A DNA stretch of 21,224 nucleotides from Paramoeba atlantica. Lineage: Eukaryota; Protista; Discosea. A program made the translations under genes and the position numbers. Within the stretch, counting starts at the first letter, position 1. Each line of letters begins with the position of its first letter. The notes under the pieces are model-generated. The model ran no database searches and was not told the origin of the DNA. It saw only the letters and a program-made list of their open reading frames with translations. The DNA is taken from positions 1 through 21,224 of the forward strand of contig CDRNVI010000231.1 of assembly GCA_977017575.1 (NCBI GenBank), written 5' to 3'. Of this stretch, positions 1 through 21,224 are shown in pieces.

Positions 1-600
1 CCTAAACCCTAAACCCTAAACCCTAAACCCTAAACCCTAAACCCTAAACCCTAAACCCTAAACCCTAAACCCTAAACCCTAAACCCTAAACCCTAAACCC
101 TAAACCCTAAACCCTAAACCCTAAACCCTAAACCCTAAACCCTAAACCCTAAACCCTAAACCCTAAACCCTAAACCCTAAACCCTAAACCCTAAACCCTA
201 AACCCTAAACCCTAAACCCTAAACCCTAAACCCTAAACCCTAAACCCTAAACCCTAAACCCTAAACCCTAAACCCTAAACCCTAAACCCTAAACCCTAAA
301 CCCTAAACCCTAAACCCTAAACCCTAAACCCTAAACCCTAAACCCTAAACCCTAAACCCTAAACCCTAAACCCTAAACCCTAAACCCTAAACCCTAAACC
401 CTAAACCCTAAACCCTAAACCCTAAACCCTAAACCCTAAACCCTAAACCCTAAACCCTAAACCCTAAACCCTAAACCCTAAACCCTAAACCCTAAACCCT
501 AAACCCTAAACCCTAAACCCTAAACCCTAAACCCTAAACCCTAAACCCTAAACCCTAAACCCTAAACCCTAAACCCTAAACCCTAAACCCTAAACCCTAA
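1..600 (+). repeat. Telomeric array (CCCTAAA)n, i.e. TTTAGGG on the minus strand, ~86 units
   Basis: Uninterrupted 7-mer repeat from base 1 to 600, ending CCCTAA|TTAAAAT. A C-rich plus strand at the window start is the expected orientation for a left chromosome end. Confidence 0.99.
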
Positions 601-639
601 TTAAAATAAAGAAAATCAATTTGAGATTTATCTATTTTG

Positions 640-1210
640 TTTTTATGTAGGGAGTAATAATATTATTTGTTATAATAGGGAAACAGAGCCAAAAGTTCTA
701 AAAGTATGTTTACAAAAGGATGCTGTAAAAATCTCTCAATATTAAAAAATGAAAAATAAAAATAATAAGGTAGTGTAAAAACATGAAATTAATCTATATT
801 TAAAGAAAACTTTGAAAATTTTTATATATTCCCCTATTATGTAGGTACCAATTCATTGATGTTTTTTTATATGTAAAATACATAGAAAAAATACTCATAT
901 TTTTGAACTCTATAAAAATCTCTCAAAATTAAAAAATAAGAAATGAAAATAATAAAATAGTGTAAAAACATGAAATTAATCTATGTTTAAACAAAACCAT
1001 GAAAAATTTTATATATGACCTGATAATGTAGGGAGGAGACTAAAATTATATGTTTGTATGTAAAAATCATATAAATGTTTTCTCAATTATTTTTGTTCTA
1101 TGAGACAAAATCAAAAATCTGGCTGGTTCAAGTTTTAGAAAATAGTTTTTTTTATTATGTTATCAAAAAAAATGAGTCCCAGCTCACTTGTTTCCTCAAT
1201 ATGTAGGGTG
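640..1210. repeat. Degenerate subtelomeric tandem repeat, period ~175-195 bp
   Basis: ATCTCTCAA at 731 and 918 and ACATGAAATTAATCTAT at 781 and 968 give an offset of 187. ATGTAGG(G) recurs at 645, 839, 1026 and 1201. Confidence 0.75.
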
Positions 1211-1402
1211 CCACTTTAAAGTTCTATCATTATATGTGAATTTCATACATAAGACCTCTTCATAAACTGCCTATAACTTTTTGTGACATATTCGGATTTT
1301 AAAAAAAAATATGCCATTAGGAAGACAAAAATGAGGCGCATCTTTCTACCAGTCTTGATTTTCCGAATTATGAAAAAAAGTAGTTCAAAACGAAGTAATT
1401 AG

Positions 1403-1416
1403 ACCCTAAACCCTAA
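1403..1416 (+). repeat. Interstitial telomeric remnant ACCCTAAACCCTAA
   Basis: Two telomere units in the same orientation as the terminal array, followed by T9. It sits at the boundary between the AT-rich subtelomere and the CT-rich domain. Confidence 0.75.
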
Positions 1417-4084
1417 TTTTTTTTTAGCTACCAAAACAACAAAACATGATTTTTTTTAGTTCTTTTTTATTTATTCCTTTTTTTTTCACTGCCACTCCAA
1501 CAGTGAGTGTTGCTCATTTCTTTCTTTTTTCTCTCCCCCCTAATCCCATCCTTGATCTTTCTCTCACTTTTATTCTTTCATTAATTTTTCATTCCTTCTT
1601 TTCCCTTTTTTTTTTTTTTTTTCTTCTTTTCTCTCTTTCCATTCTCTTTTTCTTTTCTCTCTTTTCTCCTTTCCCCTTTCTCTTCTCTCTCTTTTTTCAA
1701 AACATAAAGCAAAGAACAAAGATTCAATATTTTGCACATACACATAACACTGCTGTATCTATGAATCACTTTTTTTTTGGGCTCACTATTTGTTCTATTG
1801 ATCTGTCACCTCAGATTCTTTTATTATTTCAAAAAAGGTTTTCTCTTTCTTTCTTTTTATTTTTTTTTGTTACAAATATTTCCTCACTTCTCTCTTCTCT
1901 TCTCTCTCTTCTGATTTATTTCCAATTTTCCTTGTTAATTTCTCCACAATATTTTCCTGTTGATTTCTTTTGGAATTCCTCTTCAATATTTCTCTGCTTG
2001 CTCCCTCTCTCTGGTTTCTTTCTCTCTCTCTTTCTTTTCTCTTTCTCTTTCTCTTTCTCTTTCTCTTTCTTTTTCTCTTTCTCTTTTTTTGATTGAACAG
2101 AAATAAAAAGATTTTCTGATTCCTTCACCAATCTCAATCTCTCTGCCAATTATTTCTTTGCTGGTTCCTCTGTCAATTTATTTACCAGTTTCTCTGCAAT
2201 ATTTCTCCACCAATTCCCCTACCAAGTTGTTCACCTTTTTTCTCTGTCAATTCCTCTGCAATGTTTTTCTGCCAATTCTTCTACTGATTCTTCTCTCTCT
2301 GGTGTGTGTGTTTATCTTTCTTTCTTTTTTTTCTTTTTTTTTTCTCTTTTTTTTTTATTATTTTATTCTCATTTTCTTTTTTTTTTCTCAAAACAAAGAA
2401 CAAGTTCAAAGTTGCATGCACACAACACCATGTGTGGGGGGGTGTGTTCTTTTTTTCACCAGTCAAAACACCACAATGTGATTTTTTTTCATGTCCTCTT
2501 TTTCACCACTTTGCAACCTTCTTCCTTTTTTCAGGTTTCTTTTTTTTTGATTTCTTTCTTTGGTTTCTCCCTCAATTTTTTAGTTTTCTCTCTCTCTCTC
2601 TTTCTCTCTTTCTCTCTTTTTTTTTTTTTTTTTCATTTTTCTCAAAACACAAAACACAGAACAACAATTGTATTCCACCAATTTTTTTTGTGTTGATTTC
2701 TCTTGGAATTTCTCCTCTAATTTTTGTTTACCTTGGTTTTTTTTTCTTTCTCTCTTTTTCTTTATTTTTCCTTTTTTTTTTCTCAAAAAAAAACACAATT
2801 CACAAAGAACAAACCCAAAACTCCATTTTTTGTATTTTTCTCTTTCCTCTCCCTCACTGAATTCTCATTTTTCTTTTAATATTTTCAGATGAATTTTACA
2901 TAATGGAGAAAATTGTCTTCAGAACACTTTTTTTGTTTTAAAACTTCTTTCACCAAATTCTAAAATGAATTGATTCACAGAAAAGGTTTCATTTCATTTC
3001 TCTCTTTCTCTTTCTCTTTTCTCTCTTTCAAGTTTTCAAGTTTTTCAATTTGGTTGTTGGTTTGTTGGTTTAGTTTATAAAAAGAAAAATGAATTTTTCA
3101 GTTTTGGTTTTTCTTTTCTAACCACACTTCTTTTTCCTTCCTTTTCTTTCAATTTTTATTATTTTAGTTTCATTCTCTGCTGCTGCTGATTTAGTTTTTG
3201 ATTTCCTCACTGAGTTTTCTTTGCTGTTGATTTCTCCACTGATTTTTGTTTTTTGTTGTTTGTTCTCCTCCTCTCCCCTTGAAGCCCTCTCTTCTAGTTT
3301 TTCTCTCTTTTTTTTCTCTTTCTTTTTTTTTCTTGTCTCATCCTCTCTCTCTTATTAAATTATATTCTTTGTTTCAGTAAAGTGGAAAGAAAAATATAAT
3401 GATGTTTAATGACTCTTTTCTAAGTTCAATTTTTTGAATTATTTTTTTATTTTTTCCTCTCTCTCTCTCTTTTTTCTCTTTTTTTTTTCTTATTTTTTCT
3501 TTCAAAATACAGAACAAATAACATCATTGAATGAGCTCTCTTCTTGTTGATTTCTCCTCCAATTTCTTTTTTGCTTTTTCTGCTCCCTCTCTCTCTGGTC
3601 TCTCTCTCTCTCTCTCTCTCTATTTTCTCCCCTGTTTTCTCTCCCTCAAATTTCTCTCCTCTTTTCTTCTTTCTTTGTTCTTTCTCATTTTCTTTCTTTT
3701 CAAAATACAGAACAAACAAAAATTAAAAGTTCTTTTTGTACTAATTGATGTGTATTTATTATTAAATGTTGTGAGATGTTGTGAGATGCTTCTTCAATTT
3801 TTCTCACCTGCTTTCTTTTTGATTTTCTCTGAGCTTTCTCTGCTTTCTGTTCTTGTTTTTGGTTTCTCTTTCTTCCTCTCTCTTTTCTTTTTCTTTTCTT
3901 TTCTCTGCTTTCTCCTCTCATTTTCTTTCTTCTCAATACACAAAAAAACACAAAAAAAAGAAATTTCCTCTCTAATTGAACATTCAAGAGTGTTCACCTC
4001 CTTTTTTTCATCACCCCTCCTCTCCTTTGAGGTTTTTCTTAATTTTTTTTCTTTCCTCTCTCTCTCTTTCTCTCTAAAATACAT

Positions 4085-4975
4085 GTATTTCCTTAAGTGT
4101 AGTATGTTTAAATGAATAAGTTTTCTCTTCTCTTTCTTTTTCTTCTCTTTTCTCTCTTCTCTTTTCTCTTTCTTCTCTTTCATTCTTATTAACCTTCTTT
4201 GGTACAGAGGAATATTTTTGGATGGTTCAAATCTCAAATGAATTAAAATTAATTGTTTCCAAAGTTTCTCCTCTTTTTCTTTTTCTTTTTTTTTTCTTTT
4301 TCTTCTCTGTTTTTCTTCCCTTTTGATTGACTAATATATCCTCTTTCTTCTTTTCTCTTCTTCTTTTCTCTTTTTCTTCTTCTTCCTTTCTCAGAAAGCA
4401 TGTATGCACACATGAGAGAAGTTCTTATTTGTAAATAAATGTTACTAGTAATATCAAAAGGGTTATGTTTCTAGGATTTCTCTTCTCTTCTCTTCCCTTC
4501 TCTTCTCCTCTCCTCTCCTCTCTCCCTCTCTCCTCTCTTTTTCTTCTCTTCTCTTATCTTCTCTTCTCTTTCTCTCTTCTCTCTCTCTTTTCTCTTTTTT
4601 ATCTTCAAGGAATTATTTTTCTAATCCTTTTTTCTCTTTTTTTCTCTTTCTCTCCTCTCCCCTTTAATCTCTTCTCTCTCTTTTCTTTTTCTCCAGATGT
4701 GTATGCAACAAAGAGAGTGTTAACTGAGGTGAGAATTGTTTTTGGTGGAGAAATGACTCTCTTGGTTCTTTTTTTCTTTTCCCCTCTTCTCTTTCTTTCT
4801 CCTCTTTCTCTCCTCTTCTTCCTCTTTCTTCTTTCTCTCTTCTTTTTCTAAAATAATAAATAAATAATAATAATTTTCTGATAGAATGTGTATGAACCAC
4901 CCAAAACCCTTATCTTATATTTTGGAGCATAAGGATTGGTCTTTTCAAGTTAAAAAAGCAATGGTTTTCTTTTCT
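4085..4975 (+). repeat. Segmental duplication, copy 1 (partner ~6920-7635)
   Basis: Islands shared in the same order: GGTACAGAGG..GGTTCAAATCTCAAATGAATTAAAATTAATT; CAAGGAATTATTTTTCT; CTCCAGATGTGTATGCAACAAAGAGA..; AAAATAATAAATAAATAATAATAATTTTCTGATAGAATGTGTATGAACCAC..CAAGTTAAAAAAGCAAT. Confidence 0.9.
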
Positions 4976-5568
4976 CTCTCTTTTCTCTCTTCTCTTCTCT
5001 TCTCTTCTCTTCTCTCCTTCTCTCCTTCTCTTCTCTCTTCTCTTCTCTTTTCTTTTCTTTTCTCTTTTCTCTTCTCTTCTTCTCTTCTTCTCTCTTCTCT
5101 TCCTTCTCTTCCTTCTCTTCCTTCTCTTCTTTCTCTCTTCTCTTCCTTCTCTCTTCTCTTCTCTTCTTTCTCTCTTGTCTTCTCACTTCTTTCCTCTTTC
5201 CCTTTCTTTTTCCCTCTCTTTTTCCCTTTTTTTCTCTCTTTTCTTTCTTTATTCTTTGTTCTTTTCTCTTTTTTCATTCTCTCTTCTCTCTCTCTCTCTC
5301 TCTTTCTTTTCTCTTCTCTTCTCTTCTCTTTCCACTCTTCATTCTTTAAAATATTTTATTTGATAAAATAGAAAATGAAACTGATGAAATGATTCAATAA
5401 TTTAATTTTCTTCTCTCCATAGAGAAAAAGTTTTTTTCTTTTCTTTTTTTTCTTTTTCTATTCTTATTTTTCTTTTTCTCTCTCTCTTTCTTTCTTTCAT
5501 GCACATAAAACTGAGAAAAATATATTTCTGAAAAATTAAAAGGTTTTTTTTCTCTCTCTTCTTTCTCT

Positions 5569-5989
5569 TTTTTTTTTTTTTTGAGGCAGACTTTATTCAA
5601 TTAGTAGTTCTTAATCTAAGCCATTTGAATTACATTAAATTATGTTTGTTTTTAACCTCTAACGAGAGGTGAAGTTTTAAACTTCAGCTTAGTTCAGTCG
5701 GTCTTTATGCTGAACTTTAGAACTTCTGCAAGTTCAGGCTGGAGGATGCACATCAGAAGGGAGAATAATCCAAAGCTCCTTCCAAGGGAATTTATCCTCA
5801 ACTTTTTAGCAGACAGGGCTGAGATGTAACCTGTTCCGATTTTCACACTTCTTCAAGAGCTCCTCACTCCAATCAAATCACTCTACAGCACCAGAAAAAT
5901 TTTCTATAATATCGAAAAACTGGGATTTGAACTCGCCCCCCCGGGGTTGGACATAGTCGAATTTACGACTAAACTACGGGCACCAACCC
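5569..5989 (-). mobile_element. SINE-like retroposed element (~420 bp) with Pol III type-2 promoter head, AATAAA, poly(A) tail and 17-bp target-site duplication
   Basis: On the minus strand: A-box-like TAGTTTAGTCG (5976-5966), B-box-like GAGTTCAAATCC (5934-5923), AATAAA (5597-5592) and A14 tail (5582-5569). CTCTCTCTTCTTTCTCT is directly repeated at 5552-5568 and 5990-6006. The element retains CpGs, unlike its flanks. Confidence 0.8.
5923..5976 (-). promoter_or_regulatory. Internal RNA Pol III promoter (A box + B box)
   Basis: The A box starts 13 nt from the inferred 5' end and ends 31 nt before the B box, which is tRNA-like geometry. Both match consensus with 1-2 mismatches. Confidence 0.65.
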
Positions 5990-6369
5990 CTCTCTCTTCT
6001 TTCTCTGTTTTTTTTTTCTTCTCTCCTCTCCTCTCTTCTCCTCTCCTCTCTTCTCCTCTCCTCTCCTCTCCTCTCCTCTCCTCTCTTTTCCTCTCTTCTC
6101 CTCTCCTCTCCTCTCCTCTCCTCTCCTCTCCTCTCCTTTTTTCTGATTTTTATTTTTATTTTTATTTTTATTTTTGTTTTTTAATATTTTTTGTCCCACT
6201 GGACAAAAAGAAAAATGTTTTCTTTAGTTTTTTCTCATTTTTTTTTTTTATTTTCTCTTCTTTCAATTTCTTTTCTTTTAAATCTTTGTTTGATTCATTA
6301 CTCCTTACTTTTAAATTGGACTCTATTCTTGTTCTCTTTTTTTCTGGTTTTTTCTTTTTTCTCTCTCTC

Positions 6370-6402
<33 letters not shown>

Positions 6403-6656
6403 CACCAAAAATAATCTTAGTTCTTTTCTTCTTCTCTCTTCTCTCTCTTTTCTCTCTTTTCTCTTTTCTTCTTTCTCTTCTTTCTCTTCTCTCTCTTCTT
6501 CCCTCTTCTCTCTCTCTTCTCTCTCTTTCCTCTTCCCCTCTTCCTCCTTTTCTCTTTTTTCTTCCTTTTCTTTCTTTCTTTTTCTTTCTTTTTCTTTTCC
6601 CTCTTTTTTCTTTCTCTTTCTCCCTTTCTCTCTTTCTTCTCTTTTTCTTTCATTCT

Positions 6657-6689
<33 letters not shown>

Positions 6690-6690
6690 G

Positions 6691-6776
6691 ATTTGAATTT
6701 GGAGATCAATCTTTTTTGGTGCCTCTTGCAAGAAGTATGAATGTGTTTATGATTCTGAAATGCAATATTTATGAAG
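6691..6776 (+). other. Candidate (pseudo)exon, duplicated at 8218-8297
   Basis: (CT)n-CAG acceptor, AAG|GT end and open frame FEFGDQSFLVPLARSMNVFMILKCNIYE. The paralog reads FEFGNQFFFSAKSMNVLMVLKCNIYE, differing by a 6-nt frame-preserving indel. Confidence 0.4.
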
Positions 6777-6919
6777 GTTTTTTCTCTTTCTCTCTCTCTT
6801 TCTCTTTTTTCTTTTTTCTTTCTCTTTCTTCTTTCTCTTTCTTCTTTCTTCTTTCTTCTTTCTTCTTTCTTCTTTCTTCTTCTCTTTTCTCTCCCTCTCT
6901 CTCTCTTGATTTTTTATTT

Positions 6920-7635
6920 TCTTGAGTGTGTATGTTTAAATTAACAAATTTTCTCTTTTTTTTCTTTTTCTTCTTTTTTCTCTCTTCTCTTTTTTCTCTT
7001 CTCTTTCATTCTTATTAGACTTATATGGTACAGAGGAAATATGGGTGGTTCAAATCTCAAATGAATTAAAATTAATTAGTATTTACAAAGTCTCTCCTTT
7101 CCTCTTCTCTTCTCTTCTCTTCTTTGTTCTCTCTATTTCTCTTCTCTTTTTCTTCTTATCTCTCTCTTCTCTTCTCTTCTCTTCTCTTCTCTTCTCTTCT
7201 CTTCTCTTCTCTTCTCTTCTCAAGGAATTATTTTTCTCATCCTCTTTTCTCTTTTTTTCCCTTTCTCTCCTCTCCCCTAATCTCTTCTCTCTCTTTTCTT
7301 TTTCTCCAGATGTGTATGCAACAAAGAGAATGTTAACTGAGGTGGGGATTGTTTTTGGTGGAGAAGTGACTCTCCTAGTTCTTTTTTTCTCTCTTTCTTT
7401 CTCCTCTTCCTCTCCTCTTCCTCTCCTCTTCCTCCTCTTTCTCCTCTCTCCCTCTCTCCCTCTCCCCTCTCTTCTCTCTCCCTTCTCTCTCTTCTCTTTC
7501 TTTTCTCTTTAAAATAATAAATAAATAATAATAATTTTCTGATAGAATGTGTATGAACCACCCTAAACCCTTATCTTCTGTTTTGAAGCATAAGAATTGG
7601 TCTTTTCAAGTTAAAAAAGCAATAGTTCTTTTCTC
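6920..7635 (+). repeat. Segmental duplication, copy 2 (partner ~4085-4975; lacks the ~4290-4600 segment)
   Basis: Same ordered islands as copy 1, with point differences and different CT-spacer lengths. Confidence 0.9.
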
Positions 7636-8107
7636 TCTTCTCTCTTCTCTCTTTCTGTTCTCTTTTTGTTCTCTTCTCTCTTTCTTTCTTTTTTTTTTCT
7701 CTCTCTTTTCTTTTCTTTTCTTTTCTTTTCTCTTTTCTCTTCTCTTCTTTTTTCTTTTCTTTTTCTCTTTTTCTTTCAGTCAATAACAAAAAAATAAAAT
7801 AGATTTTGATTAATAAAATCAGAGGAGAAAAATATCATCATAGTATTACAACAAGGTTTTTTTTTAACTTTCTCTTTCTTTCTTTCTTTTTCTTTCTTTT
7901 TTCTCTTTTTTTTTCTTTCTTTTTCTTTCTTTTTCTTTCTTTTTCTTTTTCTTTCTCTTTTTCTTTCTCTCTTTCTTTTTCCCCTCTCTTTCTTTCTCTC
8001 TTCTCTTTTCTTCCTTCTCTCTTTTTTTTTTTCATAATGGTTCTCACTTTTTTTTTTTCATAATGGTTCTCACTTTTCTTTCTTTTTTCTTTTTCTTTTC
8101 TCTTTTT

Positions 8108-8138
<31 letters not shown>

Positions 8139-8217
8139 CTTCTCTTTCTCTCTCTCTTCTCTTTTTCTTTCTTTCTTCTTTCTCTCTCTTCTCTTTCTCT
8201 TTCTCTCTCTTTCTTAG

Positions 8218-8297
8218 ATTTGAATTTGGAAATCAATTTTTTTTTAGTGCAAAAAGTATGAATGTGCTGATGGTTCTGAAATGCAATATTTATGAAG
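8218..8297 (+). other. Candidate (pseudo)exon, paralog of 6691-6776
   Basis: Pyrimidine tract-TAG acceptor, AAG|GT end and the same open frame as its paralog. Confidence 0.4.
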
Positions 8298-8893
8298 GTC
8301 TTTTCTCTCTCTCATCTTTCTCTTTCTCTTTTTCTCTTTCTTCTTTCTCTTTTTCTCTTTCTTCTTTCTTCTTTTTTCTTCTTTTTTCTTCTTTTTTCTT
8401 TTCTTTTTCTTTTCTTCTTTTCTTTTCTTTTTTTTTTTTTTCCTTTTTAATTCACTTTCATTGAATAAGATAATATGGTATTTTTGTGAGTTTTTTCTTT
8501 TTCAACTTTCTTGAACACAAAAAAGACAATAATACAGAAAAGTTTTTTTTTTCTTTCTCTTTTTTTTTTTCTTTTTTCTTTTTTCTTTTTTTTTTTAAAT
8601 ACTTTTTATTTAAGTGAATCATTAATCCTTCCCTACCCACCTTGAATTTGATGCTCTTTTTCTTTCTCTCTCTCTTTGTGTGTATGTGTGTGTTCTCTTC
8701 ACATTGATTGATTATTGGTTTTTTTTTCTTTTCTTTTTTTCTTTTTTCTTTCTTTCTTTTTCTTTCTCTTTCTTTCTCTCTTCTTTTCTTTTCTTCTCCT
8801 TTTTCTCTCCAATGCTCTCTCTTTCTCTCTTTCTTTTCTTTCTTTCTTTTTCTTTTTTTCTCACTTAAATTCTCTTTTTCATTTTATTCCTAG

Positions 8894-8989
8894 GATTTGT
8901 GAAATATCTTTCTAATCTTCAAAAAGATTCAGTTTTCATTTCAATAATTCTGTGTACAATACACAACACTCCTCTTCATTCCAAAGGAG
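8894..8989 (+). other. Candidate 96-nt phase-1/phase-1 (pseudo)exon
   Basis: TTCCTAG| acceptor and GGAG|GTAACA donor. The open frame (G)FVKYLSNLQKDSVFISIILCTIHNTPLHSKG is phase-compatible with 8218-8297. Confidence 0.35.
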
Positions 8990-9181
8990 GTAACAATTTA
9001 ATTCTTTTTCTTTTTTTTTCTTTTTCTTTCTCTCTTCTATCCTTTCTTTCTTTTTCTCTTCTCTCTTTTCTTCTCTTTTTCTCTTTTTCTCTTTCTTTTT
9101 TTCTCTCTTTTTTTCTTTCTATTCCTTTTTCTTACAACCATCTATTTTGAATAAAAATCTCTTTCATTGAAAAAAAAAAAA

Positions 9182-10465
9182 TGATTTCCTTGAGAAACAA
9201 GCAATTTCCAATGTTTTTGTTAAGTTTAAAGCCAAACTTAACATTAAGTGGAAGATTGCAGAAACAAAAAACCTATCCTTTCACCAACTCCTCACTAGGC
9301 TCACCAATCTACTCCTAGAATCCAACTACTCAGCAGCTCTCAAGTATCAAAAGAAGCTCACCAGCTATCAGTTTCAAGAAAACAGAAAAAAGATAATTCA
9401 AAATGATAACTTTATTCTACTGCAAACTGTGCTCTGAGAGAATGAAGCTGGTCCAATTTCTCATGTGTGGATAACAGCCTACCCAAATTCTGAGGGAGAA
9501 GATATTCACTACAATAGACCAGATTTTTTAGATGTTGAGGAGTATTGCTTTGCTTATTGGTGCTGCTTTGACATCACAGATCCCACCCTCTTGTCTCTCT
9601 CAAGTCAAGGCACTGTCACTTGCAAGGCTTGCTCCAAACTTGTGCCAAGTTCCCTCCACCTCTCTGACTGTGTGAAATACAACTAAGGTATGAATAACAG
9701 GCATCATCATTTTATGAAACAGCTTCTCCAAATCTCCAAACTTACACAATTTGATGTGGTTTCAAATAGCCATTTCTCTTCCATTGGTCATTGCAACAAG
9801 AAGCCAAACTTAACTTTTAAACATTGGCAAGGTGGGAAACACTTGTGTCTGGATGCTACAGTTACTTCAGCCCAAGGCAGGAATGTAATATTTAGGTTTC
9901 AAGGTATGGCAACAGGCACATCAAATATGTGCAATCTCAGGAATTTACTTGCAATTCCACATATGGTGAGAATCTGAAAGCTGAATGAATATCTACCAAA
10001 ACACCTACACAGCAAAATGTTGAATGCAAGAAGAGATAACAACACCCCTGAAGAAGTAAGAACCTTTAAAGAAATTAAATTGTTCAACTTTTTAAGTGTG
10101 GAAGTTCTCTTTTTTTTTATGTTAATTTCATCAAGCAGTGCAGTTTCACCAGATGTAACAAGCTTCTTGAAGTGCATTACCTTTGAGGTTTTGCAAGAAG
10201 GTATGATATTAGATTAAGATCTCTATTGAACCTTCTTGCAATATACACAGCAATGACTTTCTGTTGCATTCATTGGCAGCATGGTGAGAAACATGAGATT
10301 TATTCAGCAAGGTCTTCACATCTCTTCTTTTTCTCCTTCTTTGAACAATCTGCCATAGCAAACTTTATACTCTAAGAAGCAAAGTCTTTAAGTGCTCCTC
10401 TTTAAAGATATTCAAAATGTTTTATCTTTCTTTTTCTCCTTTGTTTACAATTAAAATAAATTAGA

Positions 10466-10506
<41 letters not shown>
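9182..10506 (+). mobile_element. 5'-truncated, decayed non-LTR retrotransposon of the restriction-like endonuclease type (CRE-clade-like) with poly(A) tail
   Basis: Begins right after an A-run and ends with AATAAA (10455-10460) and A36 (10471-10506). Encodes the C-terminal motifs listed for 9183-9977. Confidence 0.7.
9183..9977 (+). pseudogene. C-terminal part of an RLE retrotransposon ORF: CCHC zinc knuckle plus PD-(D/E)xK-type endonuclease relic
   Basis: One continuous frame with stops at 9435 (TGA) and 9684 (TAA). It reads AGPISHVWITAYP...CKAC-x7-HLSDC...RHHHF...KPNLTFKHWQGGKHLCLDATVTS, matching the pattern AW..A.P / C..C..H..C / RH / RPD..W.GG..L.LD.TV.S that I recall for CRE-type elements. 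Confidence 0.7.
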
Positions 10507-10509
<3 letters not shown>

Positions 10510-10581
10510 AAAATTAAAATTTTTTTTTTTTTAATTTGCTTCAGAAAACAAGTTTAAACAAATAAACAAAAAAAACTACAG

Positions 10582-10593
10582 CCTAAACCCTAA
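10582..10593 (+). repeat. Interstitial telomeric remnant CCTAAACCCTAA
   Basis: Same orientation as the terminal array. It supplies the TAG stop (10590-10592) of the minus-strand ORF1. Confidence 0.7.
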
Positions 10594-11993
10594 TTAGTTT
10601 TAATTTTCGAAAAGATTTTGATCCTGATGGGAGAAAACGAACTCATCTTACTCAGAGCTGCAGCATCACGCTTGACTGGACCCACAGAGGAACTCCTTTG
10701 GACAGTTGATCCCTTAGTTGTGGAAGAAGGTACTTTGAAGTTATTGGGTACAACTTCATAGCTCTTCTTCACAGGAGGGGGGCCCTTCGGAGGGGTAGGT
10801 TCAGCAGGAATAACATTAAGTGAGTGAAACACCAACCCTTGGCCACCAACATTACGCGCAGGTAAATTTGAACCATCTTTTTTAACACCAATGGGGGAGA
10901 GACCTTCAGCAGGCTTAGAAGCTTGTGACTTGGGGGAAGTTTGATCTTTTTTCTCAGGGCCCACCACCATAAACTTACCAGTATTACCGAGGGGGGCACA
11001 GGATGAGGGGACTCCTTCAGGTGAGACAAAGTTAAATTGCACACCATCTCTGGCAGCTTGTTTTCTTATCTTAACTCCTTTGGGGTTGTGGGTGTTGATT
11101 GAGTACATTTCCGTTCTCGCCATATTGCCAACTTCACTTGGATTCTTTTTTTGTAAAATTTCAAATAAACAATCCAAACAAGCAGGATGGTTAATTTGGC
11201 AAGTGAGGCATTTCACCACTTTATCAAAGGGCCTCGATGGGGTCCAAACAGAAACTCGAGCTTGAGTATCGCTAATCTCCAACCACCCTTTGGTGTGGGC
11301 GATGAGATGGACAAAGTTAATGAAGATTTGGGTGTAAACCAAAACAATACAATTTTGGGCTATTTGAACTACTTCCTTCAAGTTATGTCTCGGAAGAGAA
11401 TTTGGGCCAGCAAAAAGATTCTGGATCCACTCCACACCCTCGGCTTCGAAGGGAACCCTGATTTTGAGCCTCCACAATTTTGCGTCCTCGTTGTTCCTCC
11501 AGACAAAGGATTTCTTGAGTTTTTTTGCCAATTCGTCGCCTTTGTTCAAAAACTCTTTTTCTATACTGGTAGCATCTATGTTTTTGAGCACTGAGATCAC
11601 AAAATGGCCCTGCTTGACATTCACAAAAATCTTCCCTTTAAGAGAAGTCACATTTTCAATTGCTTTGATAACCTCGTTGAAGTTGGGAAGTCCCGGTCTA
11701 AAATCCAGTGATCTCACTAACTTTGTTGGTCTTGACTTGGCTCCAACAACAGTTTTTGGGTTCAGGCGCATGACTAAACCTTGGTATAGTCTGACATTGT
11801 TTCAATCAATCTCGTGTAACACATCACTGAGACCTTTGGAGGCTGGAAAGCCTTCCTTGGTTTTGAGAGGTCTTTTCTTTCTCTCACTTTTTTTAACAAC
11901 TTGAGCAAATGATTCACTATCCGCTCATCCTGACCAGGTGTTTCTGGCAGGAAAACCCTCTCCTTCCTTTACACTGGGTGAAGAGGTTTCCAT
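10590..11993 (-). pseudogene. LINE ORF1 (gag-like, zinc knuckle), 468 codons with 2 in-frame TGA
   Basis: ATG at 11993 is in frame with track ORF 10590-11771, with TGA at 11927-11925 and 11804-11802. It is homologous to unit A ORF1 (FVWRNNEDAKLWRLKIRVPF vs FVWKNNQDWNLWGFKLCVPF; CLTCQINHPACLDC vs CQVCEISHSRHLKC). Confidence 0.85.
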
Positions 11994-14629
11994 AATATTT
12001 TTTGTGGCAACCAGCCACAAGAATACACACTACAATAAAAGATAGGAAATTCAGACAATTGTATCTTGAACCCTCTATTTTTTTTTTTTTTTTTTATACT
12101 CTTCAACCAATGGTTCCTTGCTTGCTCGTACTCCTCTCTCCATTTTCGGTTTTCTTTTTTAACAAAACTTTCTAACATCTCTCCAAGTGCAGCTCTTTCT
12201 GGAAACCACTTAACAATATCATCTGAAATGAACACAGGAGAAATCATCACCCCATCCAGTGCAGCTTGTACTGGGAAGTAAACATTATTAGTTGTAATCA
12301 CCTTGTCCTTAAATCTCCTTTTAAACTGAACTTTCTTCACAGGGAAGCTCCAATCCAAATCCAATGGTTCCATCACCCACTTCCACAGCTTTGAATTCTC
12401 AATAATCCATTCCTCACTGGTTGTTGCTAGTTGTTTCGATCTTGGATCCCAGTTTCTATCAAACATGACTTCCATCCCATCCTCTTCAAAGTGACTTGCT
12501 GCTGTTGCAATCGCATCTGACCTCTTGTTGAATTTGCAATACACATGAGTATACTTCACTTTGGCAAATTTACTCTCAGCAATATTTCTGATCTCAGATA
12601 GGATCTCATTGAGCTCAAAGTTATCAATCGGTTTCATCTTAGGCACTGCCTCAGTTAGAATTTTACAATCTTCCACCATCTCTACATGTTGCCCAAAGCC
12701 AATAACTTGTTGTAGACCAGCTAAACATCCCGAAAACTCACCCAAATTATTTGAGCCTAGTGGGATTGTTTCAAATCCACCTTCAACCTCCAAACTTTCC
12801 TTAATAATCACATATCCAGATCTCCCAATGTGGGGGTCTACACACCCAGAGCCATCATAAAACACTTGCAAGACAGAGTACTTGAACTTTGGTTGTTTCA
12901 CTTCTCTTTTACCTTTGGGGGGAGCCTTTCTTATAGTTTGTTTGGGGATCATCTTATTTGTCTTAGCAATTTCATCAAAAATTTTAACAGCAAAGCTTGA
13001 GGACTTCGATCCTTCTGCACATACAGTGATCCACAAGCTCAATAGGGCTGCACTCACTGCAGATGCTTCAGCCTTCTTTAGATACTGGTTTGTAAATCCA
13101 CATACAAAGTCGGCACTCTCCCACCCAGGAATCTTTAAAACAAAACATTTCTTCCCAATAGTTTTCAAAATTGCCTTAGCTTTCAGACATTCTTCAAGGA
13201 GGTACACCTTTGACTCTTTGGCTTTCCTACACAGCTGACAAAGTGGACTCACAGATGTAAAATGGGCAATCTTATCCACAGTTGGGAGACCCCTCAAAAA
13301 AAACTTCAAAAGGTTCTGCTTAATCTGGGGTCTTTGTGGAAGAGACAAATTATAGATCACACATTTCAAGCACCCATCCCCCACATAGAAATTCTCCACT
13401 CCCATAGAAATGTTCTGAGAGAGGAGAGAGAAGGATCTCTTGGTTTTGGAGCCCATCCTTACTTGTTCTGAGATAGCACCACTAGCTTCCAAAGCATCAA
13501 TCCTCATGGCCCCAATGGACAATGGATTCCTATAATGATCTTGGAGAGGTTTCTTCAATATCAGCAGAGCCCAGTTAAACAGAATAAAGTGTCTAACTTG
13601 GGGTTTTTCAAAGAAAGGGGGACAAAGAGAGGTCATTACACAGGATTTTAGATTTGTATATGCGCCTAAGGCTGAATGAATGGCCTTCCACATCTTCAAG
13701 GAGACAGCTTTTGAGATAAGCTTGAATCTTGCCAAATAACCCATACAAGGAATAAGGTAAGTATTGATCATCCAGACTCTCTCCTTGAAGCTGCCTTTCC
13801 TTTGCTTAATTGCTGTTCCAACCTTCCACATTTTCTTGATCACCCCTTCCCAGTCTTTAGTTAGGTTCATTCTTTGAGAAATTGTAACTCTCAAGTACAC
13901 AGTCTTCTCTCCCAAATAATTAACTGAAGGCATTTCAACCCAAGGGCCCACAGGAGCGAATTTTTCAGTTGACAATACAAAGCATTTGTTGTAGTTGAGT
14001 TTGGCTCTGGTTCCTTGTTCATATTCTTGGAAGGTTGAGGTCAAGGAATTTATGGATTGAACCCTGTGAAGGAGAAGGGCTAAGTCATCTATGAACCCAG
14101 CAAGCTTCTCAAGGTCACCCCCATTGTTCAAACTAACCAATAAAACATCAAAAAGGATAATGAACAAAAGAAGTGAAATGGAGCAACTTTGTTGCACACC
14201 AGTCCAGCTCTTGATGGCTTCCTTTTGTGTCTTATCATTCAATCCTACAGTTGGGAGCCATGTATCTGACTCTCGCAGAACTTTAGATACAACTTCAAGA
14301 GCTTGGGGTGGAGCATTCAACCCAATCAGCAACTTCATAAGGGCTTCACAGTTAACATAATCATAGGCCTTACAGAAATCAGTTTGGAGGATGGTCATGT
14401 CTTTGCCCTCTGCTACCGCTTCCATAAACCCATCATGTATTGATTTCACTGCATTATCAATGGACCTTCCAGCAAATATAGCATTTTGTTCTAGGGAAAT
14501 CACCTCTCTAGCACTCTCTATCAGCCATTTGGCCCAATATCTCATCACAATCCGATAATCAGAATTGGTAATATTTATTGGTCGAAATTGGTCAGAATGA
14601 GGAATATTCTCAATCTTAGGTAGTAACAC
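11969..14629 (-). pseudogene. L1-like ORF2 fragment: reverse transcriptase, zf-RVT and RNase H
   Basis: RT motifs LLPK..FRPI, DFCKAYD, GVQQSCSISLLLF (decayed GxxQGCPxSPLLF) and FIDDL; zinc motif CQLC..ES..YLLEEC; RNase H motifs FYDGS, SNNLGEF, EDC and HVYCKFNKRSDAIA. No stops, but 5'-truncated and several conserved residues are altered. Confidence 0.92.
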
Positions 14630-14631
14630 AA
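12078..14631 (-). mobile_element. LINE unit B, 3' part (RT, zf-RVT, RNase H, C-terminus, A18 tail)
   Basis: Open frame from 14629 into the A18 run at 12095-12078. The upstream continuation lies inverted at 20820-20976. Confidence 0.92.
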
Positions 14632-14643
14632 CTTAAAAAAAAA
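14617..14643 (+). repeat. Left inversion breakpoint: P (TAGGTAGTAACACAA, 14617-14631) + Q (CTTAAAAAAAAA, 14632-14643)
   Basis: The exact reverse complements occur at 20962-20976 (P) and 20980-20991 (Q). Confidence 0.9.
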
Positions 14644-14747
14644 TCAGGTTGGTTCAAGGAAACTTTCCTTGCCTAATCTGATTTTCTTTCCTTCACCTGC
14701 TGTGTTGGTGAAACCTTGCCTAGTTGAGCACTTCAGAGAAATCTGTT

Positions 14748-16781
14748 ATGTCCAGTGGAAAGAGTACATCCTCTTCCCCTAAGGGCTCCCAGAATGGGTC
14801 CCACCCCCCCTTGTATTTGAAGAACGAACAAAAAAATGCAAACCCAAGTGGGAATTCTGAAGAAATTCCAATCAAATCAACCTCGAAGAGAGCGCCTGAG
14901 GAAGGATGGTGGTTGTGAGTCAAGAAAGAAATACTGAAGACCTTGTCCCATATTGGAACTGAGGTTAACTCTGTGAAGAACAATACAATAATCTGCCCCA
15001 TCTTTGTAATGGGTTCCTTTTGTTTCTATGAAGGAATGCCAAACTATCAAAGAGTGATGGCCACACTCAACAAAGTCCCTAAGCTGAGAGGGAACTTCCT
15101 CTTGTGTGTTATGAAAGGCCACCTCAACATGGCCACCTTTGATGAAGAAACACACAAACCCCTAGAGAAAGTCATTCTGGAAAATGGTTCCTTCCTCACA
15201 ACCGGTTTTGGAAAGCCCTTTGTCTGGAAGAACAACCAAGATTGGAATTTATGGGGCTTTAAACTCTGTGTCCCCTTTTTAATTAAAGGGGAAGAGTGGA
15301 TCCAAAGATTGTTTATTGGTGAATCTGCTCTTCTTTGCCATGGATTAAAAGAGGTGGCTCAGATCAGCAATGATTGTATTGTCATCTTCTATAATGTAAT
15401 TCCTCTTATTCTGACACATATTATTGCCAAGCACAGAGGTTCTTTTATTATTAACAATGAGTTCCAAGGTAGGATCTCTCTGTGGACCCCTATGAGTCCC
15501 TTTCACGAGAAAGTAAATTGTCAAGTGTGTGAGATTTCACACTCGAGACATTTAAAATGTGTGAAGGAGATTGTGGACAAGGAAGGAGAGGGAGGAATCA
15601 TCAAAAAGTTAAATAATGAGACAGACTCTTGGAGGAAATGTCCTTTCTGTCCTGTGACAATCATGAAATTGAGGGAACAGTTACATAAAAGATTTATTAT
15701 TCCTACAGAGTCCTTGACGAATCAAGGGAATCAAGGTACAAATCTCTCTTTGTTCCAATTTCCCATATTACCAAATCCCAATCAGAGGGCACCACCCTCA
15801 ATGAAGTCTGCTGACCCTCGTCTCTCATCTACAACCCCAATGGAGGTTGATCAAAGCACAAACGTGAGGGAAACCGCTCTTCAAGAAGGTTTCTCCAAGG
15901 AAAAATCAGCCCCTTCAAGAAGTAACCAACCCAAATCTTCACTCAAAACTACTAAACCTCATAAGGAATCACCCTCCCAAACTCTGGCCACATCATCTCG
16001 CTCAGACAGTACATCAGAAACCCCAACAATCCCTCAAAAAGATATGATGGATTTCCTTGAAGATATTATTGCTGAAACTGACACTGAAAGGGGGGTTATT
16101 TTAATTGAGGATGAGGACAAGATTTCCCCAGATGTGAACAGACCTCGATTCTCAACTGATCCAATTTCTGGAAGCAAATGGTCGATGACTATCCACAACA
16201 CTGAAGGGGCTTGGAAAATATTAGATGGGGTGAATTTCCAGTGTGAGTGGGAGAGGACTGAAGATAGCCTTGGGAAGTTGAAGAGCGAGTTGGAAAAAGG
16301 ACAGCTTAAATGGGAATTGAGTTTTGATGCAGACTTCCTTGGTCACATTATTGATCGGGTGGTTGAGGAACTGAAATTAAAGCTGAAATCCAAACTGAGG
16401 AAGAGGGTAGTGTCGGAAGAGACAGTTGAGGAGAAGGAACCAACTTCTACTGGGACCAAACTATTACCTGTAACCAAGAAGCCAGCGAAGAAGAAGAAAA
16501 AGAAAAGTAGGAAAGAGAAGAAAGGGAAAGAGGAGATAGAAGAAGAGAAAGATGAAGAGGAAAAAACAAAGGAAAATGACCATGATAAGAGTGTCCCCAC
16601 TAGTGTCTTCGGGAAGGAAAAAGCAATTTATCCTTTTTTGGAGATCCCCACCTCAAACGGTTTCACAGTTCTTGGAGATTTGCATCAAATAGAATGGGGT
16701 GAGACAGTGTTGATGATGGATAGTGCTCGATTCCCTGAGTCAAGCAATGTTTCATCTTCCTCTTCTTCCTCCCCCTCATAA
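14748..16781 (+). pseudogene. LINE ORF1 (gag-like, zinc knuckle, K/E-rich C-terminal stretch) with 1 in-frame TGA
   Basis: Track ORFs 14724-14918 and 14943-16781 are in one frame, split by TGA at 14916-14918. Likely start is ATG 14748 and the terminal stop is TAA. Motifs CQVCEISHSRHLKC and CPFC. Confidence 0.85.
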
Positions 16782-17017
16782 AGGAAAGAATGAAAGGAAA
16801 GAAAAACAACAACAATTTAAAATCTTTCTTTCCACCACTGAAGAACCCTTGTGCTTCCTTTGACTCTTCTGTTATTGATCTTCATCAAAAAACAAACCTT
16901 GCCTCTCCAACCTCTCAAGCATCTGTCTTGGAGTTCCAACCCCCTTCATCTTCTTTCCTTCCTCCCTTCCCTGCGCCTTCGCTTCCAAACCTGTATCAGT
17001 ATAACAAATTCCCAGAC

Positions 17018-20000
17018 ATGAGGATTTTATCATGGAACATCAATGGTGTTCATAATGATGAAAAACTTAACCTTTGCTATAGAATGGCTGCAAGTTGCTG
17101 TCCTCTGTTTATTTTGCTCCAAAAAACCCATGCCACATCTGAAAAAGATCTTGATCATCTCAAGAATTGTTTGAGGAAATATTTGTGGTTCAAAGACCCC
17201 TTCTCGGAACAAAAGCAGGGCCTTGCCATTGGAGTCAAAAGAATGGAAGGCCTTCATGATATAGAACCATACTCAATTGAAAGCTCTGAGAGTGGTTTGT
17301 TTGGACTGAGAATCAAGATTTTCAATACTGAATATGCTGTGATGAATGTCTACCATCATTGCAATTTGAAACTTTCCTTTATGCAAGACCAAATCGGAAA
17401 GTTCTTCTCCAAAGATGGACTGAACGTTCTGGGAGGTGACTTCAACTGGGATCTTAATGAACCCCTTTTTAAAGAGCTCACAGAATCCTCTGAATCTTGG
17501 AATTTATCAAAACTGGGGTGGTCAGAACCAACCCATTTCCAAGGACAATGTATTGATCATGTCTTTATTCCCTCGAATGCTCCTAGCAAAAGAATTTTTG
17601 TTAATGCAATCCCTTCAGGCTTTAAGGACCATGTGATGATCGTAGGTGGAACTAGTATTAAAGAATGGGAGTTGAAATCTAACAAGAAGAGAATCCCTGA
17701 ATACCTCATTAAAGATCTTAAATTTATTAATACCCTCATTAATGAAGTTGGGGACTATGTGGAAGGTGATCCTGTCAGTTGTCTTATTAAACTCAAGGAG
17801 AAGGTGTGGGAATTAGTCCCTCTGTGGAAAGACAAAGGGAAAGAAGCTCATCTTTTCAAAGAACTATGGAAACTCCAAACAATCATCAAATGCCTTGCAA
17901 AGACCCAGATTTTAAGGAAAACTTCAGCCATACACTCATTCTCTTTGTTGAAACTCAAACTCCTTCATACAGCTGTAATAGGATGGAATGGCTCTTGAGA
18001 TGACAAGAAATGGAGAATCAAAGCTATTCCTAGAATGATCAAAGCTGGGATGGATTGAATTGCAGTTCTTGAACAACAACTCGGAATTTTTGTGGATGAA
18101 CACCCCTCGTGCCCTGGTCATAAATCTTCTCCCCATGTTAAAGGTGTAATTGTAGATGGAGTGATCTCTCGTGATGATAATGTGGTTAAAAAAGCAATTA
18201 AGGACTTTTGAGAGAGCCTTCTCAGTACAGAAAGACCATATAACAAGGATTCTCTTGACGAACTGATTGCTGACCATCATCCTCACTTTCCCCCAGTTGA
18301 GAGACATGATGTTGACAGGAAGAAAGTTGATAAACTTCTTCAGAGAACCAATAACACCAGTGCAGGACCCGATGGTATTCCCTTCTCTTTATATAAGGTG
18401 ACACAAAAAAAGTATTTTGACATGTGGGTGGAACTAATTCAACAAGTGGGTGAGATTATGGAGTTCCCCCCCTCTTTTGGTGAGAGCCAACTCTGTTTGA
18501 TTCCCAAAGTCGAGAATATCCCCCATCCTGACCAATTTCGACCAATCAGTGTTACCAATTCAGATTATTGGATTGTGATGAGATATTGGGCAAAATGGCT
18601 GATGGAGATTGCAAGTGGAGTAATTTCTAAAGAACAGCATGCAATGTTTAAGGGGAGGTCAATTGACGAAGCAGTAGAATCAGTGTATGACTTTTTTTAT
18701 GAAGCTCTGGCAGAAGGGAAAGATGTGACCCTCCTCCAAACAGACTTTTGCAAGGCATATGACTATGTGAATTGTGATGCACTTCTTCATATTCTCAAAG
18801 ATTTGAACACCCCCCCTCAAGCAATCTATATTGTTGAAAAGGTGCTTTGAGAATCTGTAACCTGGCTGCTGAATATTGGTGGATTCAAGAGGGGAGGCAA
18901 CAATGAATCAATCCAAAGTCGAACTGGTGTCAAACAAGGATGCTTGATCTCCCCCCTTTTGTTTGTAATTGTGTTTGACATCCTCCTGGTGAGCTTGAAG
19001 AAGAAATACAACCTCCAAGACTTATCAGGCTTTATGGATGACTTGGGAATGGTGATTCAGAAAGCTGAAACCATCAATTCTCTCACTCCAACCTTCAAGA
19101 AATATGAAGAAGCAACTGAAGCTAAACTGAACTTTAATAAGTGCTTTGTCCTCTCAACTGAGTCTTTCAAACCTGTAGGCCCCTGGGCTGAGATGGCAAG
19201 GTCCAATTACTGTGGTGATGAAACTGTATATCTGGGAGTGAGGTTGAGTAAATGGTTATCTCCTCTTAAGGATTGAGAGAAAGTGATCCTAAAGATGAAG
19301 AAAGTTGGAGCAGCAATCAAAAAAAGGGGTGGCAATTTTCGCTCAAGAGTAAGGATGGTCAATACCTATCTAACTCCATGCATGGGATATTTAGCGAGAT
19401 TCAAACTGATTCCAAAATCTGTCACCTCCTTGATGTGGAAATCCATCTGCTCAGCTCTGGGTGCCTATGCCAACACAAAAACCTCCATTCTTACCTCATG
19501 CTATCCTCCTTTGGACTCAAACCCCCAACTGCGCCACCCAATTGTTTTTAACTGGGCCCTCCTCACTTCTTGTCCACTGATGAGGAGTGATTATTGGAGT
19601 CCTCTTTCCATTAGAGCCATGCGAAAGGATGCCCTTTTTGCAGCCCAAAGCCTCTCTGCCAAGGTTATGTTTGGTCAAGCCACTCGAGTTGCTTATTTCA
19701 ATATGTCTTGAGTAATCCCCATTGAAATCAAGGATCTGTATGTGGGTGAAGGAAGAGCTGAATGTGTGGTGTACAACTTGGCACATGCAATTAGACCCCA
19801 ACTTAAGAGGAATTTGATTAAATTCCTAATAAGAGGGCTGCCTACAAGAGACAAGTTGGCTCACTTCACAAACCAAAACTCAAGTTGCTGACTCTGTCAC
19901 TGAGAAAAGGAGTCGTGAACTCATCTTCTGGAGGAATGTTCTGTGGCTGAGGACCTCCTCCAAGCAATGGGAAGGAAATGTATTTTGTTGAATGTATCCA

Positions 20001-20819
20001 GCTGGCAAGAAACTAAGAATGTGTGTGGCCTTGTCTCAAATTTTCTCACCAGACAAGAAACCTCTGTGGTGAGTGTTGCTTTGTTGAGTTTGTGGCTCAC
20101 AGTGTGTGTGGAAGGATCAAAATCACCCCAGTATGCTACTGAAATTTTCAAAAAAATCCTGAGAAAGAACAAAATCTTCCCTTGGCCCCCAAGAACTCAA
20201 ACAAAGAAAAGAACCAAAGAGAAGGAAAGTTTTAAATTTAAAGGCTTTCAAGTGTTTTATAATGGCTCAGGCTGTACAGACCCTCATCTAGGGGGTGTAG
20301 ACTTTGCAGTTTTCAAGGAAGGGAAAGAGATATATAGTGGGTTTGAAACCATCCCTCTTGGGTCCAACAATATTGGTGAATTTACAGGTTGTCTGAAAGG
20401 AATGCAATGTATCAGATCAATGACAAATGAGATTGAAGTTGTCAGGGATTGTATGATTCTCATCAAGGCTGCACCCAAAACCCATGCCATCAAAAACTAT
20501 ACCTTGAATGAACTACTTTGTGAAATCTATAAGTTAGCAATGTGCTTTGATAAGATAGAATTCATCCATGTACCCTGAGAACTTAACAAGTGAGCTGATG
20601 CAATTGCAACTGCTGCAAGTTGGTCTAAAGAGGATGGAACATGTGCTGTGAATGACCATCATTGGGATCCAAGATCACAACATGTTGCAGAAACCAGTGA
20701 AGAGTGGATTATTTTGAATTCAACCCTGTGGAACTGGATCAATTCCCCTCTCACCTGTGACTGGACTTTCTCCATCCCCCCAGGGAATTTTGTAAGGAAA
20801 TTCCAAGGAGTGATGGTGC
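17018..20819 (+). pseudogene. L1-like ORF2: APE endonuclease, RT, zf-RVT and RNase H, with 11 in-frame TGA and no frameshift
   Basis: Endonuclease motifs MRILSWNING, LQKTH, GDFNWD, IDHVF and DH; RT motifs SAGPDG, LIPK..FRPIS, DFCKAYD, GVKQGCLISPLLF and FMDDL; zinc motif C*LCH*EKES*THLLEEC; RNase H motifs FYNGS, SNNIGEF and HVP*ELNK*ADAIA. The frame is open upstream to ATG 16790. Confidence 0.93.
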
Positions 20820-20976
20820 AATAATTCAAGTGCTGGCCCAGATGATATTTCCTTTGTTCTCTACAGAGTGACAAGTGAACAGCTGTGTGATATGTGGTGT
20901 GAACTTATCCAGAGAGCTGGGGAATCAATGGATTTCCCTGAGTTGTTTGGGGAGAGTCAGCTTGTGTTACTACCTA
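20820..20976 (+). pseudogene. LINE unit B, 5' part (start of RT region), inverted relative to its 3' part
   Basis: Translates NNSSAGPDDISFVLYRVTSEQLCDMWCELIQRAGESMDFPELFGESQLVLLP. This is homologous to unit A at ~18350-18505 and ends at the VLLP where the minus-strand ORF at 14629 begins. Confidence 0.9.
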
Positions 20977-20991
20977 TTTTTTTTTTTTAAG
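20962..20991 (+). repeat. Right inversion breakpoint: rc(P) TTGTGTTACTACCTA + T12-AAG containing rc(Q)
   Basis: Inverted copies of 14617-14631 and 14632-14643. Confidence 0.9.
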
Positions 20992-21224
20992 GTTTAGACA
21001 CCAGGTGCTATTTATTAGAATTAAAAACCATCTCTAGGATGGAAAAGAGGGGGGAAGAAAGAGGGGGGGGAGGGGAGATAAGTTAAGAGTTAGATTCAAG
21101 GATCTCTTCAGCATGGAATGCATTGGAGTTTCTTTACCAACTTTAGTTCTCACTAAGGGGTCTGCATTTGATTGTCCATCTTCTAAAACCAGGGAGTGAA
21201 TTCAGTTTGGAGGTTTCTATGAAG
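20977..21224 (-). mobile_element. 3' end of a further polyadenylated unit (D), probably a retroelement or retrocopy, extending beyond the window
   Basis: On the minus strand a reading frame ends in TAA, followed by AATAAA (21016-21011) and then, about 22 nt later, A12 (20988-20977). Too short to assign a family. Confidence 0.45.

Follow-up and report, generated by a model that had tools for sequence, protein, structure and literature searches.

The window analysed here is the whole of contig C231 (CDRNVI010000231.1, 21224 bp) of the Paramoeba atlantica genome assembly, which from ~9.1 kb on is filled with retroelements. Open frames between 12 and 21 kb encode an apurinic-type endonuclease, a reverse transcriptase and an RNase H-like domain; the elements are therefore of the long interspersed nuclear element (LINE) type. 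They fall into two families, A and B, and positions within them refer to two full-length copies bounded by target-site duplications (TSDs), namely a 6556-bp family-A copy on C184 and a 6936-bp family-B copy on C180. The genome searched was the 45.7-Mb assembly of 248 contigs. There was no indication of human or viral DNA in the window. In the right-hand part of the window, pieces of A and B stand in an order that requires an orientation flip of some kind, as was recognized in the first-pass annotation, where it was attributed to a 6.3-kb inversion between two staggered breaks. We give somewhat better than an even chance to a different history, in which nested LINE insertions in a subtelomere were followed by one exchange between two inverted family-A copies, its steps being read from the anatomy of the junctions. 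The features concerned are the following.

12098-14631, minus strand: B3', family B from 6701 down to 4168 (reverse transcriptase and RNase H part), 95.4% identical to the family-B reference.

14617-14631: first copy of P, a putative 15-bp TSD corresponding to family B 4168-4182, at the 5' junction of the proposed family-A insertion.

14632-14643, plus strand: first copy of Q, read as a 3-nt filler (CTT) and a 5' oligo(A) run (A9); fillers of 0-4 nt are found at other loci.

14644-20809, plus strand: unit A, family A from 1 to 6149 (ORF1, and ORF2 with APE, RT and RNase H), 94.4% identity over 6166 bp.

20810-20976, plus strand: B5', family B from 4018 to 4182 (20812-20976; left end at ~4016), 95-96% identical to at least 13 B copies.

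20962-20976: second copy of P, identical to the first, at the 3' junction of the proposed family-A insertion.

20977-20988, minus strand: poly(A) tail (A12) of unit D and source of the A-run in the second copy of Q.

20989-21224, minus strand: unit D, family A from 6556 down to 6320, ending in ...AACCTT, 93% identical to the family-A reference and reaching the contig end.

The reading frame of B3' is intact, with matches to RVT_1 (E=2e-17) and RVT_3 (E=2.5e-9). Measured against the TSD-bounded 6556-bp copy, unit A is without the last 407 bp of family A. At family-A loci elsewhere, the segment seen here as D comes ~170 bp after the segment seen here at 20600-20809, on the same strand.

The short repeats on which the inversion had been built are present as described. 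Thus, the exact reverse complement of P (TAGGTAGTAACACAA, 14617-14631) stands at 20962-20976, and that of Q (CTTAAAAAAAAA, 14632-14643) at 20980-20991, with three additional T at 20977-20979. The two B pieces overlap by exactly 15 bp, namely B 4168-4182, which is P. The fragment at 20810-20976 groups with unit B and not with another family: at least 13 other B copies (at least 93% identity) carry the corresponding region without a break and with P only once. A flip of 14632-20976 would indeed rejoin B. In a whole-assembly search, the junctions 14631/14632, 20809/20810 and 20976/20977 were each unique to contig C231, and assembly-wide searches with both junction regions and the B fragment returned neither an uninverted paralogue nor a source locus. 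The idea of paired inverted duplications holds for one member of the pair: P is far beyond chance, but Q has three informative bases (CTT) only. An A run makes up the other nine of its 12 bases; on the other side, the matching bases form a normal poly(A) tail, and the CTT falls at 20989-20991 (minus strand). Q is weak as a second duplication because both an A run and CTT are expected at these family-A ends.

This expectation comes from the insertion layout of the two families. Seven TSD-bounded insertions, drawn from both, follow one order: TSD, 0-4 filler nucleotides, oligo(A), element, 3' end, poly(A), TSD. The TSDs measure 15 bp on C184 (GACTCTCTCACCTTC), 9-13 bp on C199, 16 bp on C142, 15 bp on C154 (TATTTTCAAACTAAT), 13 bp on C180, 13-17 bp on C177 and 14-15 bp on C140. 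Three of the seven have no filler, and the fillers of the others are AT, GGTT, C and TT; the 5' oligo(A) run, 5-50 nt long, lies inside the TSD in all seven. An A-run also precedes the 5' end at 16 of 16 family-A loci with the exact 5'-end motif. The 3' end of family A reads ...AACCTT plus poly(A) in 12 of 13 copies, CTT being its conserved last triplet, and that of family B reads ...TCTAAAATT(A)n. The edges of the seven TSDs yielded no usable consensus for an endonuclease site preference.

The oligo(A) run, often with a filler that mostly ends in T, between the 5' TSD and the start of the element was encountered at 14635-14643, at 12078-12095, and at loci L014-L024 and L038-L042. Given its place between the TSD and the first base of the element, the run was laid down with the insertion; one possible source is template jumping, in which the reverse transcriptase passes from the 5' end of the RNA onto a poly(A) tail. 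We found no description of it in the literature, although no search was aimed at it.

Set against this layout, the two outer junctions are read as follows. On the plus strand, the left junction runs from antisense B (...ctcaatct) through TAGGTAGTAACACAA and ctt into A9 and TCAGGTTGG..., the family-A head (A9-TCAGG). On the minus strand, the right junction runs from ...GGTGTCTAAACCTT (AAACCTT) through A12 into TAGGTAGTAACACAA and then gctgactctcccc..., which is again antisense B (gctgactc). Relative to the element, the two copies of P are direct and stand immediately outside the family-A 5' and 3' ends, and their 15 bp are within the length range of the seven bounded TSDs. In the family-B reference, as in at least 13 other copies, the sequences that flank the two junctions run together as antisense B 4198..4138 and contain P once. 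On these sequence features, P is probably no inversion scar but a TSD, left by a family-A copy that entered B in reverse orientation. The first copy of Q would then combine a 3-base filler with the family-A 5' A-run, and the second would belong to the CTT-poly(A) tail. C154 and C183 have antisense LINE-in-LINE 5' junctions of equal form, and locus L002 combines an antisense 3' junction with a 5'-truncated B inside family A.

These results bear directly on the model of the first-pass annotation. It supposes an ancestral order of D tail, then A joined to B. Two double-strand breaks, with staggers of 15 nt at P and 12 nt at Q and perhaps due to a LINE endonuclease, would have been followed by fill-in of the ends and by re-ligation of the 6.3-kb segment 14632-20976 in inverted orientation. 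The topology is an exact fit, P has the stagger length of the family and, as the one advantage of the model, CTT before the A-run needs no coincidence. It also has parallels elsewhere: Drosophila offers established cases of inversion by staggered breaks that left inverted duplications (PMC1885836), and exchange between ORF2p-made breaks inverts DNA in human cells (bioRxiv 10.1101/2024.12.14.628481). Nevertheless, its proposed breakpoints, 14631/14632 and 20976/20977, are indistinguishable from family-A 5' and 3' insertion junctions with P as a direct TSD, and the case for Q comes down to the three bases just mentioned. The D-tail-to-A-head junction that the flip would restore has no precedent in the genome, the pattern AACCTT-A(5+)-N(0-30)-GGTTGGTTCAAG giving 0 matches in the 45.7-Mb assembly. 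Further, one of the breakpoints must by chance hit 15 nt between two elements, and the inversion would be an extra rare event on top of nested insertions, including B in A, that are needed anyway. As for the enzyme, the P overlap has the exact TSD size of the family and an element-encoded endonuclease therefore made that stagger, as had been suggested; the TT/AAAA preference cited for it, however, is not seen in the seven TSDs. We regard the model as very unlikely. A flip by the LINE machinery in one form or another, that is, either two endonuclease-made staggered breaks (at P and between D tail and A head) or a remodelled intermediate joined wrongly, is in our estimate quite unlikely.

If the two outer junctions are those of an insertion, the order of its parts is not. 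The family-A head (14644-20809, plus strand) and tail (20989-21224, minus strand) are not collinear but face each other, with B 4018-4182 between them, and one further exchange, or an assembly error, is therefore needed. The third junction is 20809/20810. Here, family A stops at 6149, 17 nt past the ORF2 stop, and B starts at ~4016-4018 on the same strand, with neither filler nor microhomology. Elsewhere, B reads through 4017/4018 in 19 copies. The arrangement resembles that of a B copy with a truncated 5' end that has landed in an older family-A copy. The three canonical junctions cannot all be collinear because unit A would then have to contain B and at the same time lie inserted in it, and two family-A copies are therefore the simplest resolution.

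With two copies, the history could be pictured in three steps. First, an old family-A copy, E1, would have received a 5'-truncated B (from 4018) at A 6149 in the same orientation, giving rise to 20809/20810. Second, another family-A copy, E2, would have inserted backwards into this B by target-primed reverse transcription, its endonuclease cutting with a 15-nt stagger at B 4168-4182, 165 bp from the start of the truncated B. Such an insertion would leave a 5' junction of P, filler CTT, A9 and TCAGG... (now 14617-14660) and a 3' junction of ...AACCTT, A12 and P (now 20962-21000, minus strand). Third, E1 and E2 would then have formed 6.1-kb inverted repeats around a spacer of ~180 bp, and one homologous-recombination exchange between the inverted arms would have flipped the centre. 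The predicted product is rcB3'-P-CTT-A9-A(1-6149; head from E2, rest from E1)-B(4018-4182)-T12-AAG-rcA(6556...; tail from E2). In a token-by-token check by hand, the inferred series of nested insertions plus one exchange reproduced the observed order exactly. The exchange itself would not be visible locally because it makes no new junction sequence, and an assembly path that strayed from one arm to the other would have the same appearance. That the contig ends inside the short central segment fits a near-palindrome that was difficult to assemble, or a weakly supported end.

Having favoured two nested family-A copies and an exchange, we would note what speaks against them. No crossover point is visible, and the divergence of unit A from four other copies is uniform in 500-bp windows. 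The right arm amounts to only 236 bp (A 6320-6556) in the contig and has no overlap with the left arm (1-6149); the second family-A copy is thus inferred, its arm beyond 6320 lying outside the contig. Family A itself ends in CTT, and a filler of the same three letters has a chance probability of roughly 1 in 64, unless RNA tails serve as the template for fillers. A divergence of ~5-6% makes recombination between two arms less easy than between identical ones. Finally, the predicted order, with E1 older than B and B older than E2, is absent from the age estimates.

Those estimates draw on the loss of CpG sites, which reaches 84-94% in A of the window, 73% in B3', 3/3 sites in D and 5/5 in B5', and on a non-CpG divergence of 2.5-4.3% for the pieces of the window. 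Across copies, CpG loss spans 6% to 94% and non-CpG divergence 0.2-3.4%. All pieces of the window are similarly old and among the oldest copies, and no insertion order could be set from CpG decay and stop codons. ORF2 of unit A (16739-20590) contains 11 in-frame stops, all of them TGA, and no frameshifts. At the same positions, the aligned codons of other copies are CGA, CAA, TGG, CGT or CAT, and some are TGA as well, which points to C-to-T changes at CpG as the probable origin of most of the stops, rather than to a variant genetic code. The overall pattern points to a decay of these LINEs that may be methylation-type or resemble repeat-induced point mutation (RIP).

An assembly error would dispense with the exchange. 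The true locus would then be a full-length, P-flanked family-A copy in B beside an inverted older family-A copy, and the assembler would have switched between the inverted family-A arms or ended on a poorly supported read. Speaking for this, the whole 21-kb contig stops 415 bp after the A/B junction (20809/20810) and 248 bp after the right copy of P; both orientations of the centre use the same three local junctions, so that only reads longer than ~6.3 kb would discriminate between them; and the reciprocal junction is absent from the assembly. However, a difference of ~5% between family copies is usually enough for long-read assemblers to keep such arms apart, a random chimera is excluded by the locus-specific P junction on the right-hand piece, and a fold-back read would yield a perfect palindrome, of which none was seen. 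We judge such an artefact unlikely. The observation as such is real, and P is highly significant, but the reality of the orientation flip itself is uncertain.

A different economy is offered by treating A and D as one family-A element that lies backwards in B with P as its TSD, and in which a ~590-bp segment (A 6150-6556, i.e. the last 407 bp, then the tail, P and B 4167-4018) was later inverted by two-break end joining, with 20809/20810 as the one visible breakpoint. This would keep the canonical reading of 14631/14632 and 20976/20977 and make do with a single family-A element, and L1 insertions with local inversions, which take in flanking DNA as well as part of the insert, and with TSD-like overlaps of 13-15 bp are known in human cells and tumours (bioRxiv 10.1101/2024.12.14.628481). 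The second breakpoint, however, should place A 6150 next to B 4017, and this reciprocal junction is absent from the assembly; all 19 of the 19 other B copies cross 4017/4018. Moreover, 20809/20810 has no microhomology and is equally well a plain 5'-truncated nested insertion. A small inversion of this kind is, in our view, rather unlikely. The reciprocal junction was sought with B 3720-4140 and with A 5999-6339, and neither search found it, 40 of the 69 candidates having been scored in the family-A search. The one B copy at a contig end, that of C193, which starts in antisense B at 3805, was tried as the continuation of the locus, for which it was the sole candidate, and rejected: its CpG decay is 35% vs 73-76% for B in the window, and its non-CpG divergence 1.2% vs 2.7%, decay being consistent along other copies.

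Twin priming was weighed as well. On this model, a B RNA would have been copied from its tail to 4168. A second cDNA would have started at B 4182 from the nicked poly(A) tail of the D already in place, changed template to a family-A RNA at 6149, continued as far as the 5' end of that RNA and been joined to the first. An inverted 5' part beside the upstream target, with a small overlap, is the topology of 5'-inverted L1 insertions, for which twin priming and variants of it have been described (PMC2837659); the underlying model is that of Ostertag and Kazazian (2001), as relayed in bioRxiv 10.1101/2024.12.14.628481 and PMC2837659. The end of the second cDNA would also carry the usual A-run. Nevertheless, the inverted and the direct part do not derive from one RNA, since the inverted part joins 165 bp of B to 6149 bp of family A, and a template switch from one internal site to another is required. 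In addition, the 15-nt overlap would equal the TSD length only by chance, and the A-tail primer would have to prime on an RNA to which it is not complementary. On the 3' side of B, where a direct outer TSD would be expected, a further element, unit C, intervenes at 12097/12098. The apparent precedents on C154 and C183 are more simply antisense nested insertions. Twin priming is therefore, to our minds, the most improbable of the histories considered.

Both of these precedents were looked at in their own right. At C154:15361-24063 (loci L043 and L051), a family-A copy in a 15-bp TSD holds an antisense family-A copy (4508 to 5) and is without ~4.5 kb across one junction. Reading C154 as a single insertion with built-in inversions was dropped in favour of the simpler antisense nested copy plus a 4.5-kb deletion, and the locus serves as a worked example of the two combined. 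C183 had been a candidate for a second filler of CTT plus A-run, and was discarded when the CTT there turned out to be host sequence. Elsewhere, at C234:13900-14182, a family-B copy carries a ~190-bp deletion (~B 4183-4372) that starts a few bases from the P site; this may be coincidence or mark a fragile spot.

The remainder of the window places the locus on the chromosome, and adds three further features.

1-600, plus strand: telomere repeat (CCTAAAC)n, period 7, 85.7 copies, 100% matches.

10597-12077, minus strand: unit C, family B from 1481 down to 1 (5' end and part of ORF1), 96.1% identical to the full-length family-B copy.

12078-12097, minus strand: 5' oligo(A) run (A18) of unit C with the 2-nt filler AT, at a point where family B runs on elsewhere.

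The (CCTAAAC)n array shows that the locus belongs to the end of a chromosome. The stretch at 600-9100, which separates the telomere from the first retroelement, holds ~8.5 kb of CT-rich, low-complexity repeats with a strong strand bias (GC skew to -0.74). They are followed at 9130-10596 by a 1.47-kb repeat that is present at 10 or more other loci with 81-96% identity. Inside this repeat lies a run of A36, and the opening 52 bp of the repeat are found again at ~25 or more additional loci. The repeat, a possible subtelomeric or telomere-associated element, finishes in telomere-like CCTAAACCCTAA, right at the point of truncation of unit C. Unit C, nested in unit B, is itself cut off at 10597. The A-run at 12078-12095 had earlier been taken for the poly(A) tail of B. 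It is instead the 5' A-run of unit C, because family B extends a further ~235 bp past the point at 12078-12097 in four other copies, and its true 3' end lies there. What had been described as a head-to-tail chain of elements on each other's poly(A) tails is likewise better read as nested insertions. The locus as a whole is of an ordinary kind, namely transposon debris at a chromosome end.

How do the individual parts compare with known systems? Like nested insertion of elements without long terminal repeats (non-LTR) by target-primed reverse transcription, the locus has a 15-bp direct TSD from a staggered cut, a 3' poly(A), LINE-in-LINE nesting and 5' truncations. Unlike the usual product of that pathway, the families studied here carry 5-50 nt of oligo(A), often with 1-4 filler nucleotides, before the element, and in the window the ends of the insert face each other instead of being collinear. 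Inversion by ectopic recombination, i.e. non-allelic homologous recombination (NAHR), between inverted transposon copies is familiar from L1 and Alu in primates and from Galileo in Drosophila. As in those cases, two inverted copies of one family would flank the flipped segment, with no new junction; here, in contrast, the spacer is ~180 bp, which makes the whole a near-palindrome, the second arm is outside the contig, and no crossover tract is seen.

The staggered-break inversions with inverted duplications at both breakpoints that Ranz et al. (2007; PMC1885836) reported in Drosophila share with this locus short sequences of which the presumed ancestor has one copy and the flipped segment two, inverted with respect to each other, one at either end. 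They differ in that one duplication is here a LINE TSD, and the other consists of three bases and a homopolymer. With twin priming, the locus has in common part of a LINE inverted beside its own 3' part, and a small overlap at the switch point. It departs from it in that the inverted part belongs mostly to the other family, the overlap has the length of a TSD, and both outer junctions look like plain insertion junctions of the other family. Lastly, breaks made by L1 ORF2p have been reported to lead to inversions beside an insertion, with TSD-like overlaps of 13-15 bp between primary and reciprocal breakpoints (bioRxiv 10.1101/2024.12.14.628481). That system is somatic and was observed in human cells, whereas nothing here requires ORF2p breaks, and the reciprocal junction that they predict is not in the assembly. 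None of these three, neither Drosophila-type staggered breaks nor twin priming nor ORF2p-break inversion, is needed for this locus.

The comparison calls for caution, in that TSDs and homopolymer ends in LINE-rich DNA with nesting in both directions can mimic the scars of staggered-break inversions. For annotation, it supplies a junction grammar for two abundant LINE families, made up of a ~15-bp TSD, 0-4 filler nucleotides, a 5' oligo(A) run and defined 3' termini. Should the quite unlikely flip by the LINE machinery prove true after all, the locus would be a natural, fixed germ-line counterpart, in a free-living protist, of the ORF2p-driven inversions of human cell models and tumours.

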